DNA from: Geosiphon pyriformis uo1
Lineage: Eukaryota; Fungi; Glomeromycota
DNA: 34,746 nt
Assembly: GCA_016748015.1 (NCBI GenBank)
Contig: JAAOMT010000430.1
Coordinates: 49,594-84,339 of the forward strand
Direction of reading: 5' to 3'
Program-made: the position numbers and the translations under genes
In this document: piece after piece, positions 676-23,063 of the stretch
Numbering within the stretch: position 1 is the first letter of the stretch
Layout of the letters: each line of letters opens with the position of its first letter
The notes under the pieces: model-generated
Told to the model about the DNA's origin: nothing
The model's input: only the letters and a program-made list of their open reading frames with translations
Databases searched by the model: none

Positions 676-981
676 ATGATAAATTACCTCAAAAAACTTA
701 TTGGACTCACTTTGATCCTATCAGTCTGTCTCTTTGTTTTATCTAGCGCGTTACCACAAGACGGCGGTAACGCCTACGCCAATGGCATCGGCGGAGACGG
801 CAACGGCGGCGACGGTGGTAACTACAACGGCAACGGTGGCACGAACAAAGGCAACGGTGGCAAGAACAACGCCAACGGTGGTAAGAACAACGGCAACGGT
901 GGTGATGGCAAGGGCGGCAATGGCACTGGCGGGAAGGCCTACGGCGGCAATGGCGGTGTTAAGTACACCTACTATTGTAAG
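676..981 (+). CDS. Secreted glycine/asparagine-rich repeat protein (3' end lost in gap)
   Basis: Signal peptide MINYLKKLIGLTLILSVCLFVLSSA|LP, then GGNAYANGIGGDGNGGDGGNYNGNGGTNKGNGGKNNANGGKNNGNGGDGKGGNGTGGKAYGGNGGVKYTYYCK. No stops; GC-rich GGC/AAC codons against an AT-rich background. The terminal GTAAG (977-981) could be an intron donor. Confidence 0.85.
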
Positions 982-1780
982 NNNNNNNNNNNNNNNNNNN
1001 NNNNNNNNNNNNNNNNNNNNNNNNNNNNNNNNNNNNNNNNNNNNNNNNNNNNNNNNNNNNNNNNNNNNNNNNNNNNNNNNNNNNNNNNNNNNNNNNNNNN
1101 NNNNNNNNNNNNNNNNNNNNNNNNNNNNNNNNNNNNNNNNNNNNNNNNNNNNNNNNNNNNNNNNNNNNNNNNNNNNNNNNNNNNNNNNNNNNNNNNNNNN
1201 NNNNNNNNNNNNNNNNNNNNNNNNNNNNNNNNNNNNNNNNNNNNNNNNNNNNNNNNNNNNNNNNNNNNNNNNNNNNNNNNNNNNNNNNNNNNNNNNNNNN
1301 NNNNNNNNNNNNNNNNNNNNNNNNNNNNNNNNNNNNNNNNNNNNNNNNNNNNNNNNNNNNNNNNNNNNNNNNNNNNNNNNNNNNNNNNNNNNNNNNNNNN
1401 NNNNNNNNNNNNNNNNNNNNNNNNNNNNNNNNNNNNNNNNNNNNNNNNNNNNNNNNNNNNNNNNNNNNNNNNNNNNNNNNNNNNNNNNNNNNNNNNNNNN
1501 NNNNNNNNNNNNNNNNNNNNNNNNNNNNNNNNNNNNNNNNNNNNNNNNNNNNNNNNNNNNNNNNNNNNNNNNNNNNNNNNNNNNNNNNNNNNNNNNNNNN
1601 NNNNNNNNNNNNNNNNNNNNNNNNNNNNNNNNNNNNNNNNNNNNNNNNNNNNNNNNNNNNNNNNNNNNNNNNNNNNNNNNNNNNNNNNNNNNNNNNNNNN
1701 NNNNNNNNNNNNNNNNNNNNNNNNNNNNNNNNNNNNNNNNNNNNNNNNNNNNNNNNNNNNNNNNNNNNNNNNNNNNNNNN
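982..1780. other. Assembly gap (799 N)
   Basis: Run of N. Confidence 1.
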
Positions 1781-3510
1781 NAATATTTCTTCTTAAATTT
1801 ATATTGTTTTTAATTATTTACTTTTGATTATTTATTAGTGGATTATTTTAATCAATAAAATAAAAGTAATAATCTTTGTAAAATCATCAAAAGTTATTTT
1901 CTTATTTATTATATAACAAATTACATTTTTTTGTTCTAAGAAACAAAAATTTATTTTATGACTTTTCTTAAAAATAATTTAAACAAATTGAAAGTCATTC
2001 TTTATACTTAATTTGCTTTCTGCTTGAATAAAAATTTAATAAACCATTTTGAAAATTTTGAAATTAATTTTTTATTGAAAATTCAGCTGACATTTATACT
2101 GCTTATTTAGTTTACTTTTTAATGAAATCTATTTTGAAAACAACAAATTAATTAATTACTTTATTCGATTAACCAATAACTATTTAATTTTGAATACTTA
2201 AACAATTAAATTTATATATGTATAGCTACTTATTGATTATTCGAATTTTTTTTTAAACCAGAAAACAAAAGCTATTAAACAACTTTTATTTTGACTTTTT
2301 TAAAAAAATCTGATATTTTAAAAACTTTTATATATAAATTTATGATTATTGTAAATAACAATATATTGCGAGTTTTTTAAAACATAAAAGGTATTTCAAC
2401 TAATACAATAATATATTAATTTTATTCTTTAGAATAATTTAGTTAAATGAAATAAGGATTGTTATTGTTAACTAATTAATAAAAATTACAAGCTTTAAAT
2501 TATTGGTAAGTATTTTTAGCTACATAGATTTTCCAAAATACTGTAAATAACATTAAAAATAATTTATTGGGTTTTTATTAATACAAATAAAAATAATGCA
2601 TTCAAGACCTTTATAAAATTATAATTAAGCATGTCAAAAGAATTCAAAAATTAAACTTAAAAAAATTGAATTAAAAAACAAGAAATAATTTATCCTTAAA
2701 AATCTAAAATCAATTTATTATACACTTTTTGGTTTCATTTTGCTTTAACTTTTGCTTTAGCTTTTGTTTTTTAAATAGCTACCAAATTTTTTTCTGTATA
2801 AACATATAATTTAAGTAAACAGATTAACTAATAATTTTGTTTGATTATTGATAATATTTGCCCAAATAGTCTTAAAAAATAAAAAACCTCAAAATAAACT
2901 TTAATAGAAACAATAGTTACAACTCTATTTTAATTATAAACAACGAAATTTCGGTTTTTTAATTTATTATTATTGTTAAATGCTTTTAAAAACAATTCAA
3001 AAAAATAATAGATTTTTAATTTTAACCAATAATTAATGTTTATAATAATAATAATAATATCTTGAAATTGCCCAAATTATATTTGGTCAAATTAATGAAA
3101 TGTGCATTAAAAACAACATAATATATTTGAAAAAAAAAACTATATAATAATTATTAACAATAAAGAATTCAAGAAAGCCAAGACTTTATTAATTTACAAG
3201 TTATATAAATTATATATTTGCTGTAAAAAACAATTTATAGTAATTAGGTACCAATATTAAAATATTATCTCAGAAAGAATATAACAATATTTTTAGCAAT
3301 AAAACAAAATTAATAATAAAAAAATTATTGAATTCAATAATCAATTTTAAAATAAAGTAAAATATGAATAATAGTAACTTTTATATTAAAAACAATTGCC
3401 ATATTAAAAAAAGATTAAAATATTTTATTATTTTCTTAAAAAAATGAAACTTTGATAAAATAAAATTAGGTATTTCTTGTCTAATAACCTCCTTGGGTTA
3501 ATTATAAACC

Positions 3511-9057: not shown

Positions 9058-10243
9058 CAGTCTGGTAAGAAAAAAATTGGAAATATAAAACAATTACTAT
9101 GTCTTAACTAATGTACCAAATTACATAAAACAACTTTTACTAGAAAGTCAAATACCATATAATTTTATTAAAAAAATAATAAACTATTTGTCTCTAATTC
9201 ACTACGATTTTGAGGCATTCTTTTTTCTACATTCTTTTTAACAATAGCCCAAAGGTTTTCTATTGGGTTTAAGTCGGGACTATTAGATGGCTACCCCAAC
9301 AAATCAGTTGTATTCTCAGCAATAAACTCTTTGGCAAGCTTGCTAGTATGCTTGGGATCATTATCTTGTTGGAAATGCCAATATCCCACAGCATTGCTCT
9401 AATTTCAGATAAGTGGTTACGAAGAATATCTATATAAACTTTAGCATTCATTATTTGAACAAAACAGAATAAACTAGTCTTTCCTTTTTCGTAGAAACCC
9501 CCCTCCCCCCCCCCCCTTACGCGAGAATTTTTGTTCGATCTTTAGACATAGGACGAATTGGTCGAGTAACTTTATGCCAATGTTTTACCGTGTTTTGAAA
9601 AAGTTGAAAAGATGTTTCGTCAGTAAAAATTGTTCTTTTCCAATTGTCGCTAAGGTGTTTTTTGGCCCATTCTACATGTTTTCACTTATGCTCTTCGGTC
9701 AGCATTGGAGTTGCTCTAGGAAGACTTTTTTTATAATTAAGGTTGGATAAATGATTTTGAATAGTAACATGAGAAACATTTATTCCCTTCTTAGCCAACT
9801 TTATTGCTAAATATCTAGACGAAACTGAGGAATCTCTACAAATAATCTGCCCTAATACTTTCGAAGAATTTCCCATAATCTTTCTTGGCCGATCATTACC
9901 ATTCGCATGCTTTATTGTTCCTTTTTTTATGAGTTTTTCGAGGATATTATAGATCGTAGAAAGGGGTATATTCGTTTTATTCTGTATTTCTTTCGCCTTT
10001 TGTATTCCTTGCTTCCAAAAATGTAATACGACTTGCCGTTGCGTTTCTTGCTTTGAAGTCGGCATTTCAAAGACAAGTTTTAAAAAAAATTATTAGTTAA
10101 TACGCGAGAAAATATTTTTAGAGCTCAGCCACTTACCTAATATTCTGTTTCCATTTTTACCGTCACAAAACTTACCAAAAATGGTTAAACCAAACGCAAT
10201 ATTAGTAGATTCATATTTTTCCAATTTTTTTCTTACCAGACTG
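9058..10243 (-). mobile_element. Full-length Tc1-type (IS630-Tc1-mariner) DNA transposon, 1186 bp, with TIRs and TA target-site duplication
   Basis: Perfect 26-bp TIR CAGTCTGGTAAGAAAAAAATTGGAAA at 9058-9083 and its reverse complement at 10218-10243; TA at 9056-57 and 10244-45; internal transposase. Confidence 0.95.
9195..10065 (-). pseudogene. Tc1-family DDE transposase, disrupted
   Basis: HTH N-terminus (MPTSKQETQRQVVLHFW...IPLSTIYNIL), stop after EEHK, then WKRTIFTDETSFQ, FQQDNDPKHTSK and [18 protein letters not shown]. Poly-G expansion and frameshifts. Confidence 0.92.
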
Positions 10244-11019: not shown

Positions 11020-12295
11020 ATGTCACCCCAACAACATTTTTCAAGCTCTATCCAATGATTTCGGGAATTTATTTAACACTCAGAAGTTCTCTGATGTTAA
11101 AATTGTGGTTGGCGAAACACCCAATATCTGAACTTTTCATGCTCATTCACAAATTTTAGATTAAAAAGGAAAATAATACCATTATCTTCCCTAAACCTAA
11201 TATTTCTCCTAACATTTTTGAGATAATTTTCAGGTAAGGGTTTTCATTTGCTTTAAAGTATTTTGGCCAATACAAATTTATATGTTTTATTTTCCTGTAA
11301 AGATATATTTATAATGGCGAGATTTCTCTTGATAAACATGGAGTTCCTACCATTTTAGAAGTGATTTTTACCGCTGACGAGCTTATCCTAGAGAACGTTA
11401 TTGATTACCTTGAAGACTATTTGATTGAACACCATCCAAAAGAGCTAGAAAATAATTTTGCCACTTTGCAAAAAACTTTATTTATGCATGATTCTTTCAA
11501 AAAGTTACAAAATTTCTGCACCGAAATAGCTGCTAACAATCCAGCTATGGTCTTCAATTCCCAAGATTTCACCTTTCTAAGTGAAAATGCTCTTTCCTCA
11601 ATATTAACCCGGGATGATCTAAGTATAGAAGAATCTGAAATATGGCAAAAAATTGTGGAATGTGGAGTTGCTAAATTGGATAACAATATTCAGACAAAAA
11701 ACGTTATTTACTGGACAGATGATAACTTTAACGCCTTTATGGAAATCATTGAAGAATTTCTACCTTTAATCCGGTTCTTTAACATATCTTCAGTTGATTT
11801 CTATCACAAAGTAAAACCATTTGCGAGAATCTTACCTGGAACTTTATATAAAGATCTTTTACATTATTATCTCGTACCGGGTAGTCATCAAAAGTCTGTA
11901 GATGCTAAGCCATTACGATGTTCTCGATCAAATATTGATTCAGAGCTTCTTCAATTGCATAATATAAGATAGCTTGATAATTGGATTCAAGGCAAAAACG
12001 AAAATACTCCTTTTGAAAACGAATGTAGCAATAATTTTGAATTACTACTTCGGGCAGTCGAGACGAATTCACTCCAGCCGATTTTCATCGATTATATGAT
12101 GATAAAGGAGCATAATAAAAGTGAAAGTGACTGGTCAACTAATTGGGATTAAGTGGCAATGATTTTAAAAATAGTCCAGGGTGCTGTTGTAAAATGGAAA
12201 TAATTTATGAGCATGATATAATACCTGGATCAGAAAATTAAGAGGTAGAATTTTTTGTCGAAGAGTATGAGGTTTTTCAAATCATAAAAAGATAA
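11020..12295 (+). pseudogene. BTB/POZ-BACK-TLDc protein pseudogene
   Basis: LSNDFGNLFNTQKFSDVKIVVGETPNI*TFHAHSQIL; GT-AG intron 11234-11302 splitting FEIIFR/YIYNG; ADELILENVIDYLEDYLI; BACK region LSSILTRDDLSIEESEIW...LPLIRFFNIS; TLDc FELLL.GSRDEFTPADFHRLYDDKGA and terminal FVEEYEVFQI. Internal stops, frameshifts and deletions. Confidence 0.9.
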
Positions 12296-19150: not shown

Positions 19151-19689
19151 CTCCATCAAAGCCAGTCGAGGAGGTGAAGTTGCGTTTTCAATTGATGAAG
19201 TTGAAGACATGATTTTCAAGCAATACAAATTGATTATGAAAACTTTGAATATTTCATATAGATAAAAAAAGCATTTTAAAGAGTTCATTTTGCTAATAAA
19301 TAAAAATTTTAACCTAAAAATAGACGCTTATTTCATTCTTTTATTGACTTTCTTAAACGGGTAAAGATCTTCTGAAACTCAAGGCGGTTTCAAATAGATT
19401 TTTTTGGAATGTTCAATAGTTTATTGATAGATTTCTTTGCATAATCTAGTTCTAAGGTTCCGGATAGGCCTAGCAACTTCTTTAATAGCAGCTTTCGCTT
19501 GCGTAAAGTTTTTTATCTTAGATTTTAGTGAGTTGATACAACCAATTTAATCTATATGTTTTAAGCGTCTTTTACCTCAATTATTAAATGAATATTAATG
19601 TTAATACATATGCGTATCTACTAATCAACATATCCAGAATTTCAACCCACTTGGCAAATATTTTTATTACTAGAATTATGCATAGCCAA

Positions 19690-19915
19690 TTTTATACTGA
19701 ATTCTTTAAAATCACTTATCTATGATTAGAAAAATTCTAGGAAATAAATGACAGTTTCAGTAAGATAATGATCCAAAACATAAAAGTCGGATTGCTCAAG
19801 AATTTTTTGCCGAACATATGCCTGATGTCATAGATTGGCCAGCTCACAGCCCAGATTTAAATCCTAGTGAAAACTTATGGGCTATTGCTAAAGGTAATGT
19901 AGAAAGACAAATCTC
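19690..19915 (+). mobile_element. Tc1-family transposase remnant (second D to E region)
   Basis: FQ*DNDPKHKSRIAQEFFAEHMPDVIDWPAHSPDLNPSENLWAIAKGNVER; no TIRs seen. Confidence 0.85.
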
Positions 19916-20296
19916 GAGCAATCAATCAAGTTAATCAGATCAATAAAAAGGCAGTGCAAATTCGCGATCGAAGCTAATGGTGTTATCGCAAACATTAAGT
20001 CTGTTTTTTTTTTAAAAAAAATAATTAATGAAAAGTGATTTCCAATCATATAAGTGAGGTATATGCATTGTGTTTGGAATGCGTAACGACGTTTTGCTCC
20101 TGTATTTTGCCCCAAAAATACGCGTTTTCCAGCTATTATCTTCCCAACACCCTTTTTTTTGCTTCTAAAAAACTTGCCTATGTGGCTTTTCACATACACT
20201 TCCACTGTAGTACGATTCATTGTTGGGACTGGGCCTGACAACTACCAAAGATTGTTATGCATATAGCTCTTATTGAGTAACACCTTCTTTGCATTC

Positions 20297-20609
20297 CTCT
20301 TTGGTTTACTGCAAACCGTTCACACAGTCTAATGCCTTAAAAGACTTTATGAGTTATTAAGAAATTGGAATGTAATATACCAAATTCGTAAAGAAGACAT
20401 ATGTAACATCTCTACTTATAGTCTTTCAATAAAATTGTAGAGGTTAAATATTCTTATAAATCTCCTGTTGTGTTTCTCTTTGGTTTGCTGCAACCCATGC
20501 ATACAGTCTGATGCATTAAAACCCTTTATGAGTTATTAAGAAATTGGAATGTAATACATGTAACAGCTCTACTTATAGTCTTTCAATAAAAGTTGTAGAG
20601 GCTAGATAT
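20297..20609. repeat. Tandem duplication (period ~179 bp) upstream of the small secreted peptide gene
   Basis: ctctttggttt.ctgcaa...acagtct.atgc.ttaaaa...tttatgagttattaagaaattggaatgtaata...atgtaaca.ctctacttatagtctttcaataaaa.ttgtagagg.ta.atat at 20297-20451 and 20476-20609; the second copy lacks ~22 bp. Confidence 0.92.
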
Positions 20610-20748
20610 GCTTGATCTCGTCTCCTTAAAATTTATAATCATGTATCAATAAATTTAATTTGATAATGTTGAAAATTTTATTTTGAAAAGTAAAACTCAT
20701 AAATTTATTAAATCCATTTCAAGCTGAAATCAAACGAGAAAAATCTTC

Positions 20749-20756
20749 TATAAAAG
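20749..20756 (+). promoter_or_regulatory. TATA box (TATAAAAG) of the small secreted peptide gene
   Basis: TATAAAAGA 139 bp upstream of ATG 20888; same motif as at 565; start context caaaATG. Confidence 0.6.
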
Positions 20757-20887
20757 AAGGTTGAAGGCTCACTAAAAAGAAAGTACCTTTGAAACCAATC
20801 AATTAAATCACCAAATATTTCTTTAATATATTCAAATTTCCAATAAATAACTTTTTTGCTTTTCCTACCAATTTTAATTTTTCCAAA

Positions 20888-21148
20888 ATGTTTAACTTAC
20901 GATTTACTCGTGCATCTATTATTTTTTTGGTGGCAACAATTCTTCTCACACATCTCTTCGTCTCGGCTCTACCGGCTCCAATTACCGCGAAGAGGAACCC
21001 TAATGGCTTGCTTAGTGATCTTACTAATAGTAATGTTGGAAGTATTGCTAATAGTAGTATCGGAAGTCTTACTAACAGTAATGTCGGGAGTATTGCTAAC
21101 ACCGGGAATGGTAATACTATCGGGACTGGCAACACAGTTACTCTTTAG
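20888..21148 (+). CDS. Small secreted protein: signal peptide + pro-region + Kex2 (KR) site + 50-aa Asn/Ser/Gly/Thr octad-repeat peptide
   Basis: MFNLRFTRASIIFLVATILLTHLFVSA|LPAPITAKR|NPNGLLSD-LTNSNVGS-IANSSIGS-LTNSNVGS-IANTGNGN-TIGTGNTVTL*. Intact single exon. The 48-nt repeat (21020 and 21068) differs only at synonymous positions over LTNSNVGSIAN. Confidence 0.85.
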   Translation: MFNLRFTRASIIFLVATILLTHLFVSALPAPITAKRNPNGLLSDLTNSNVGSIANSSIGSLTNSNVGSIANTGNGNTIGTGNTVTL

Positions 21149-23063
21149 TGGATGATAATCCTAAGTGCGGGGTTTCAATCTCAAAATGGTTACTGAAATA
21201 GTCATTATTTTTATAAACAACTTATTTACACATCTTTTGTAATTTCATTTCATCTTTAAAGTAGGGAATTGTTTTCAACCATGGTTAAATTATTAGTTGC
21301 TCAAAAGACTTGTTAGCTATAATTACAAAGTTCATAAAAAAACCTTATTTAACAGTTAAATTTTTTCAAAAAACAACATGAGACACAAATTTATTAATAT
21401 AAAAATTACTTTTATTATTAAAATTGATGATTTAGTTTTTTGTAGAGGGAAAATTTAATCAAGAGTTTTTTCTTACGAAATTTCACTGTTAAAGAGCTTT
21501 ATTGAATATGTAACTATTAATCTCATCACAATTTGAGCAGTTTGTAATTAATATATAAAGCTAATGTTTTTACAACAATAAATCCGAAAGGAATTTTGTT
21601 TTTTTGTCTAAAAATGCATAGGTTATAAAATAAAAACTGATATATTATTAATTCAGTACAAAAAAATCGGGTTTTATTTATTTGACCTTTTTTTTGAATT
21701 CGGTTATTACATAATATTTTTTTAAAAAATAAGCTAAAAACTAACAATAAAAAAAACCCATTATAAACATGCGCTGTTATGAACTTTCTAATTGATTAAA
21801 TAATTTTTGTAAAATGGTTTCAAGGATTCATTTCTTGACTGGCAACATCCTAATTGCATGAATAAACAATTTTAATAAAAATCAAGTAAACTAGGTTGAA
21901 TCAATTTTGAACTGACTTAATTCTCGAGTGAAGCGATTGAAACAAAAAATTCGTTCTATTTTGCGTAGAAATTTTTTTATAAAAAACAATTTTATGTTTT
22001 GCATTATAATTGTAAATATGATAATAAAATATTACAATATATACTTATTTACTTAAAAATTACTCGTTAATTAAATTGTAATTATGAATATCTAAAAAAT
22101 TTTGTTTGAAATTATTTTATTTTAATAGTATTATTTTTTCTAAACATATATGTATTGTTTAAAATAATTTTAAAAAAATCTATAAGGTATTTAAAGTAAA
22201 ATATTTTTAAATCAAACCATATTTTTTATTTTTTTAAATTTTATGTTATAAATTTTTAAGAATAGTTACTTGAGTGTTTTAGTTAAATATATTAAATTTC
22301 AAGTATTATAATTTTTGACTTATTCAAAAAACCATTTTTATATATATTATAAAATAAAATTGTATTAATTTTTTTATTATTGATGTTTTCATTACAATTT
22401 TTTTGTTAAACATTTAATTTACTTAAACCAAACCCATTTCAAGATCTTGTCTTCTCATGATAATTGCTTAAAAAAATGAGTATAAATTTTTTGAATCACA
22501 ATAAATGTTTTTTTAAACTAATTTAGAAATAAATTTAACGAGATAATTTCTAATATCTCGAATTAAGATTTTTTTAATTAAAGAAGCTATGACTTGAAAA
22601 GTTCTGACAAAGAAAAATGTATTAAAGATTGAAATTAATCTAAACTTAAAATTATAAGCCCAAACTAAAAATAAACATAATAGAAATTATATTTATTATG
22701 TGACAAAGTAATTATCAATTGCCAAGGTTAAAAAAAACTATTTATATTTTCCTATTATAATTGCTATTTTCAATTCATAATGAAAACCAATAGCCCCCAT
22801 TCTTTGAGGGCTCGAAAGTGTTAATCGCAATTAGATCTTATAAAAGAAAATGGATAGCACACATCTATAAATTTAAACAATTTCAATTTTTAATTAACAA
22901 ATTTATATTTATAGTATATATCTATAATCTAAATTATATAGAAAATAAGCTGCGTCTTTTTTTTATATTTCTGTTTTCTTTTCACTATAATTATTGTTAA
23001 ATTCAAAGCTAAAATTATTAAACAAAGAAAATCATTGCACTCATAATAACAATTTCAAAAAGT

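Follow-up and report, generated by a model that had tools for sequence, protein, structure and literature searches.

The window analysed here, a stretch of 34,746 nt of Geosiphon pyriformis DNA (assembly GCA_016748015.1, contig JAAOMT010000430.1, positions 49,594 to 84,339 of the forward strand), contains an intact ATG open reading frame (ORF) of 86 codons at positions 20888..21148 of the plus strand, exactly as reported in a preliminary description of this DNA. With moderate confidence, we regard this ORF as a single-exon gene of G. pyriformis for an 86-residue secreted pre-pro-peptide, which belongs to a lineage-specific, leader-sharing family of about 12 copies. The ORF with its features, the family, the mosaic pattern of identity among its members and the presence of genes for processing enzymes are established by the analysis presented here (Table 1).

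Table 1. Features of the ORF and of the surrounding gene unit (positions refer to the window)
Feature	Position	Strand	Basis
Signal peptide, residues 1-27	20888..20968	+	inspection (predicted cleavage between VSA and LP); AlphaFold helix 2-26
Pro-piece LPAPITAKR, residues 28-36, with dibasic Kex2-type end K35-R36	20969..20995	+	translation; candidate cleavage site
Asn/Gly/Ser/Thr-rich tail, 50 residues	20996..21145	+	translation, composition
Stop codon	21146-21148	+	translation
Repeated gene unit (promoter, 5'UTR, ORF, conserved 3' flank), 1.38 kb, about 12 genome copies	20597..21976	+	homology to other loci
TATAAAAG box, about 135 nt ahead of the start codon	20749..20756	+	read directly; putative promoter element
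Conserved non-coding 3' flank of the unit	21154..21976	+	59-98% identity to other copies
Hypervariable block, about 63% identity to the closest paralog	21018..21153	+	segment alignment
Three 24-nt (8-codon) tandem units inside a 48-nt repeat	21019..21099	+	repeat finding, Tandem Repeats Finder, residue self-identity

Architecture, predicted processing and annotation of the precursor

Inspection of the precursor reveals an n-region, MFNLRFTRAS, with two Arg, a hydrophobic core of 15 residues, IIFLVATILLTHLFV, and thereafter the sequence VSA, so that cleavage in front of LP would obey the -3/-1 rule. AlphaFold predicts residues 2-26 to form one helix (pLDDT 81-90). As stated in the preliminary description, the signal peptide and a short pro-piece ending in KR precede a tail of 50 residues, which contains one charged residue (D44) and no Cys. 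The tail is composed of 11 Asn, 8 Gly, 8 Ser, 7 Thr, 5 Leu, 4 Ile, 3 Val, 2 Ala, 1 Pro and 1 Asp, and opens directly after the KR with Asn-Pro, a possible Ste13-type dipeptide. Its C-terminus, GTGNTVTL, has no hydrophobic tail, and a GPI-attachment signal, which characterizes the AGL-type GPI-anchored proteins of AM fungi, was not seen on inspection. The eight conserved cysteines of hydrophobins are likewise missing from the tail.

The genome contains one match to the proprotein-convertase P-domain (53 bits, above the Pfam cut-off) and one gene with a DPPIV_N domain, which makes the presence of a kexin and of a Ste13-type dipeptidase plausible. We infer transcription, secretion, cleavage and a function of the ORF along the following lines: the signal peptide would direct the precursor into the ER, a kexin-type protease would cleave after K35-R36 in the late secretory pathway, and a Ste13-type dipeptidase may subsequently trim Asn-Pro. 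The product released to the extracellular space would be a peptide of about 48-50 residues that is rich in Asn, Gly, Ser and Thr, lacks Cys and is almost uncharged; it may be flexible, probably O-mannosylated and associated with the wall or an interface.

The layout of the precursor corresponds to that of the fungal Kex2-processed pro-domain (K2PP) proteins (Outram et al. 2021, PMC8528282), in which a signal peptide is followed by a short, disordered N-terminal pro-piece with KR, RR or LxxR at its end, this site lying in the N-terminal half; here, the signal peptide is followed by a short pro-piece with a canonical KR, LPAPITAKR, at residues 28-36 of 86. However, the known K2PP effectors of plant pathogens are folded and often rich in Cys, whereas the peptide encoded by the ORF comprises 50 residues of low complexity behind a candidate cleavage site. 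In addition, an aliphatic residue is preferred at position P4 of Kex2 sites (PMC8528282), and P4 of K35-R36 is Thr, which counts against the favoured reading. KEX2-processed repeat proteins (KEPs) such as α-factor and Rep1 of Ustilago are also secreted precursors with KR, and those trimmed by Ste13 carry an X-Pro dipeptide after the site, as does the ORF. The KEP pipeline, however, asks for three or more repeats with dibasic sites between them (Le Marquer et al. 2019, PMC6339444); with a single KR and no such sites between its repeats, the ORF is not a KEP. Its predicted architecture therefore fits the K2PP class rather than the KEPs.

The G+C content amounts to 40.6% in the ORF and to 23.6-23.7% in both flanks, and this excess of about 17 points stops at the bounds of the ORF, which argues for a real gene. 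The length of the ORF alone is not decisive for its coding status because the window contains eight ATG ORFs of at least this length. The main rival explanation, which is tentative and somewhat unlikely in our view, is that the ORF represents a silent or decaying paralog, for which the unit was copied together with promoter and leader, the payload drifted and the reading frame stayed open by chance. Both the number of ORFs of this length in the window and the repeat-rich surroundings speak for this explanation; however, 86 open codons amid DNA of about 24% G+C, with the excess confined to the ORF, are difficult to reconcile with it.

Another point in favour of decay is that the ORF is unannotated, since neither an exact look-up nor a word-indexed search of 5.8 billion proteins found an entry for it in the protein collection. 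The latter search also returned no homolog outside Geosiphon, and a profile of the ORF and its paralog had the paralog itself as its sole match among 1.84 billion representative proteins. No homolog was found in JGI metagenome contigs, no usable match among ESM Atlas features, no Pfam family at E values up to 10, and a single low-complexity match (E 1.5) among PDB sequences. The three runs returned by a sequencing-run search were all of DNA type and came from one study; the lack of an RNA run would agree with a silent paralog, but is weak negative evidence at most; neither the homolog nor the transcript searches could prove absence. The closest paralog, L002, was identified by exact look-up as KAG9299834.1, the hypothetical protein G9A89_003378 of G. 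pyriformis (97 aa), and is annotated with the same single-exon model, which supports the favoured reading. The pro-piece LPAPITAKR is identical in L002, and every indel between the ORF and L002 is in frame, which argues against decay. The motif ALPAPITAKRNP(N/D)GLLS is kept only in this paralog (L002/L014), which continues with a second KR and whose Asn/Gly-rich tail is a different one. The ORF had initially been proposed to encode, without being annotated, a pre-pro-peptide that is secreted and carries a Kex2-type site, and this appears to be the case. Both the KR and the NPxGLLS behind it are kept in the closest paralog.

The repeated gene unit and its divergent mature part

The genome, in which protein and DNA searches revealed the copies of the unit, comprises 128.3 Mb in 792 contigs. 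Seven other loci are homologous to the window from 20597 onwards; the homology extends to 21976 in three of these and stops a little earlier in the rest. The TATAAAAG box is retained in most paralogs and in the GN-rich relatives L009 and L012, and retention of the TATA box and of the leader is a further argument against decay. No conserved ORF was seen in the 3' flank when its ORFs were listed. Upstream, different copies of the unit adjoin different dispersed repeats, and the sharp 5' edge of the unit is the junction at which these repeats abut. In the window, the region just upstream (19400-20596) belongs to a dispersed repeat of which the genome contains at least 40 partial copies, and another dispersed repeat is found at the same place in L014, L016 and L017. 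At the 5' edge, positions 20401-20455 and 20558-20613 form a local direct duplication with a spacing of 157-158 nt, each copy of which contains an inverted repeat, CTCTAC...GTAGAG, followed by GCTAG/GTTAA. A simple repeat with a period of 3 nt at 23270-23334 matches similar microsatellites beside several paralogous units. A transposon origin of the 1.38-kb unit was rejected as there are only about 12 copies, no terminal repeats were detected and the 5' edge is explained by the abutting repeats. The window as a whole is gene-poor and contains transposon remnants; its recognizable features include a Tc1/mariner-type transposase HTH fragment (9685-10065, minus strand, PF01498, 32.5 bits), a BACK-domain fragment (11361-11969, plus strand, PF07707) and the longest ORF of the window (676-1827, plus strand, 383 aa), which has no Pfam match.

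Identity across the copies ranges from 82 to 98% in the 5' flank, from 79 to 99% in the signal-peptide exon of those copies that keep it whole, and from 56 to 98% in the 3' flank; the 33 nt of the exon that remain in L020 are 67-79% identical to the other copies. The signal peptide of the window copy shares 85-88% nucleotide identity with six of the seven other aligned copies and 79% with the deleted copy L020 over these 33 nt. The stretch coding for the mature peptide can be aligned in one copy only, and the tails of the copies are compositionally unrelated: those of L004 and L007 are acidic and rich in Gln, Glu and Asp, and that of L005 is hydrophobic. According to the favoured reading, the copies would combine a common promoter, leader and 3' flank with unrelated, fast-changing mature parts. 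However, at least four sister copies are clearly broken (L016 lacks the ATG, a deletion in L020 covers the start, and frameshifts occur in L019 and L011) and others have short unrelated tails, which speaks for the decaying-paralog explanation.

Comparison of the window with L014 (G000:C469:120718-124095) reveals about 98% identity on both sides of the payload, namely 98% at 20955-21017 and about 98% at 21154-21700, and about 63% in the payload itself (21018-21153); further outwards, the values are 85% for the 5' flank, 88% for the signal peptide and 87% for the distal 3' flank. Likewise, the flanks of L016 and L017 are 96-98% identical, whereas their payloads share about 48% identity. The 5' flank and signal peptide of L014 are 97-99% identical to those of L016/L017, whereas it shares 98% identity with the window copy in the pro-piece and the proximal 3' flank. 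L014 is therefore a mosaic and the copies exchange DNA; judged from these identities, it is a clear recombinant, which shows gene conversion among dispersed paralogs on different contigs.

These patterns could also be read as a diversifying payload cassette of toxin, antimicrobial or effector type, the targets of which could be the Nostoc partner or competing microbes, an idea that we consider unlikely. It is favoured by the low identity of the payloads between nearly identical flanks, by the exchange of segments of window type and L016/L017 type in L014, and by a Ts/Tv ratio of about 1, which is not RIP-like, so that RIP-type hypermutation of the payload was ruled out. However, between the payload and that of the closest paralog, the increase in dN (0.44; ratio about 1.3) is matched by that in dS (0.35), and positive selection alone hence fails to explain the payload; moreover, repeat slippage renders the central alignment unreliable. 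The corresponding values for the leader are 0.109 for dN and 0.073 for dS (ratio about 1.5), and with such ratios in tail and leader, there is no sign of purifying selection between the copies, which fits the decay of the paralog. Some of the payloads also sit in broken copies. Gene conversion that homogenises the flanks and halts at the heterologous, slippage-prone centre may produce the same picture in the absence of selection and is the simplest account of the sequences, diversifying selection on the payload being possible.

More doubtful is the notion of a leader-cassette family, in which promoter, signal peptide and 3' flank are frozen by conversion and the payload of 130 nt evolves at more than ten times the rate of the non-coding DNA beside it. 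Conotoxins and amphibian skin peptides are families with conserved leaders and hypervariable payloads, and the unit resembles them in that signal and flanking DNA are conserved and the mature region is far more divergent than the neighbouring non-coding DNA. In contrast to these peptides, the family described here is known from DNA alone, dS is equally raised, so that positive selection is not evident, and conversion of the flanks can account for the pattern.

The octad repeat and the predicted structure of the tail

The 8/16-residue (24-nt) periodicity that was initially noticed in the tail was confirmed by tests at both the nucleotide and the residue level. Tandem Repeats Finder reports a period of 24 nt with 3.2 copies and 78% matches at 21024-21099, a separate repeat search found three copies with a spacing of 24 nt, and the self-identity of the residues has its maxima at lag 8 (0.35) and lag 16 (0.37), with values of about 0.1 elsewhere. 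Fixed positions of the octad are occupied by hydrophobic residues, with Gly, Asn and Ser in between. The duplicated copies had been described to differ only at synonymous sites, which was taken to suggest selection on the protein. This is correct for the 11-codon block LTNSNVGSIAN, which contains four synonymous and no non-synonymous differences, an outcome that four random substitutions in this block would produce with a chance of 0.002-0.008; however, the block was picked post hoc, and the 16-codon repeat extends over five further codons, which contain four non-synonymous differences. The four synonymous differences in the duplicated block speak against a decaying paralog, but the case for selection on the protein is weaker than originally claimed, considering a dN/dS ratio of about 1.3 towards the closest paralog. 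Conservation of KR and octad in homologs, as envisaged in the preliminary description, is seen for the KR only: the closest paralog, the sole paralog with a related tail, keeps the KR, but has lost the periodicity and register of the octad.

It was further suggested that the released 50-mer stacks its 8/16 units as a β-solenoid or amyloid and has a surface-coating, hydrophobin-like or ice-binding role, which we judge to be very improbable. In its favour, the periodicity is real, hydrophobic residues recur at fixed positions, and the tail is rich in Asn and poor in Pro. GN-rich proteins have been associated with amyloid characteristics, and a low content of Pro and Gly is used as an amyloid criterion for repeats (PMC8786786). 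Weak periodic strands are also present in the AlphaFold model of the GN-rich relative L009 (pLDDT about 58); however, this model is of low confidence and has no significant structural match in the PDB. In the AlphaFold model of the ORF product, a monomer calculated with a two-sequence alignment, residues 47-86 are without secondary structure (pLDDT about 45) and are preceded by a low-confidence helix at residues 38-46. Through Pfam, PDB sequences, the ESM Atlas and the profile search of 1.84 billion proteins, the ORF product could not be connected to any ice-binding, ice-nucleation, HET-s or repellent family. Furthermore, the tail comprises only about three short units and the periodicity is lost in the closest paralog. 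In the fungal secretory pathway, many of the Ser and Thr residues of the tail are probably O-mannosylated, which also argues against stacking. The proposal of a β-solenoid, amyloid or ice-binding peptide thus found no support in the disordered tail and the family searches; the amyloid idea is unsupported rather than refuted, because a monomer model cannot exclude intermolecular stacking.

Relationship to the GN-rich proteins and meaning for the family

Schultz et al. 2022 (PMC8786786), citing the thesis of Hoffrichter (2018), describe GpRIC1-3 of Geosiphon as secreted, disordered, GN-rich proteins, which account for 22.3%, 5.0% and 3.0% of the reads of a cDNA library and all of which carry KR as possible Kex2 sites. 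Relatives of the GpRICs occur in Paraglomus and Ambispora (PMC8786786). GN-rich ORFs are matched at 77 places in the genome, which collapse to a few dozen loci, and the family alignment shows that a strict unit of 13 residues, NGNxNGNxNxGxx, makes up these ORFs. A short pro-piece with a dibasic end behind the signal peptide is the norm in this family: it is present in 14 of the 22 ORFs that were extracted, with KR at residues 25-32 in ten and RR in four more. L062 (G000:C773:420270-423749) and L064 (G000:C771:44135-47659) contain KR at residues 32, 99, 166 and 233, and this strict spacing of 67 residues identifies them as predicted true Kex2 repeat precursors. Of 12 GN-rich ORFs that were looked up, not one is present in the protein collection, and most of the GN-rich family therefore seems to be unannotated. 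Exact look-up found no match of genomic ORFs to RIC accessions, and a search with a 283-aa GN-rich ORF returned hypothetical proteins of Ambispora and Geosiphon as well as bacterial GN-repeat proteins, with no RIC name among them. The 13-residue repeat is also found behind signal peptides in bacterial proteins (Mesorhizobium, metagenomic); these matches are P0008, P0003, P0007, P0002 and P0004, two of which have a C-terminal, hydrophobic, anchor-like tail.

The promoter and signal peptide of the window copy (20623-20981) are homologous to those of the GN-rich locus L009, with 63% identity over 364 nt (E 1.7e-23), and the L009 protein matches the ORF product with an E value of 5e-4. The ORF product also comes from the same organism as the GpRIC and GN-rich proteins and shares with them the signal peptide, the KR and an Asn/Gly-rich, Cys-free and Pro-poor tail. 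However, its tail has a period of 8/16 residues, is rich in Ser, Thr and Ile and contains 38% Gly and Asn, whereas the RIC unit is a strict 13-residue repeat, and the protein is much shorter. A derivation of the octad from the 13-residue unit could not be demonstrated, as the DNA similarity is no better than that of codon-shuffled controls. As part of the favoured reading, both leader and promoter would have their origin in the GN-rich genes, whose features agree with what has been published on the RICs. Since the leader is homologous and the tail lacks the 13-residue GN repeat, the ORF represents a divergent, leader-sharing offshoot rather than a typical RIC.

To our knowledge, Geosiphon is the only fungus that houses cyanobacteria, and we know of no function for its secreted GN-rich proteins, which are among its most abundant transcripts. 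On present evidence, the gene described here adds modestly to a known family and does not represent a novel type of structure; of greatest interest is the combination of a conserved leader and a hypervariable payload with clear gene-conversion mosaics. The family leader is also joined to short, non-GN payloads that were missed by the genome annotation, and these payloads diverge far faster than the surrounding DNA. The family thereby offers a small peptide, accessible to synthesis, with which functional testing can begin, as well as a defined set of loci at which it can be asked whether selection or gene conversion underlies the diversity of secreted peptides in Glomeromycotina. Provided that the payloads are expressed and that selection keeps them different, the family would constitute a toxin- or antimicrobial-like diversifying system in an early-diverging symbiotic fungus, in which the cassette might target the cyanobacterial partner or competitors, and the ORF described here would be a payload that gained an octad repeat.
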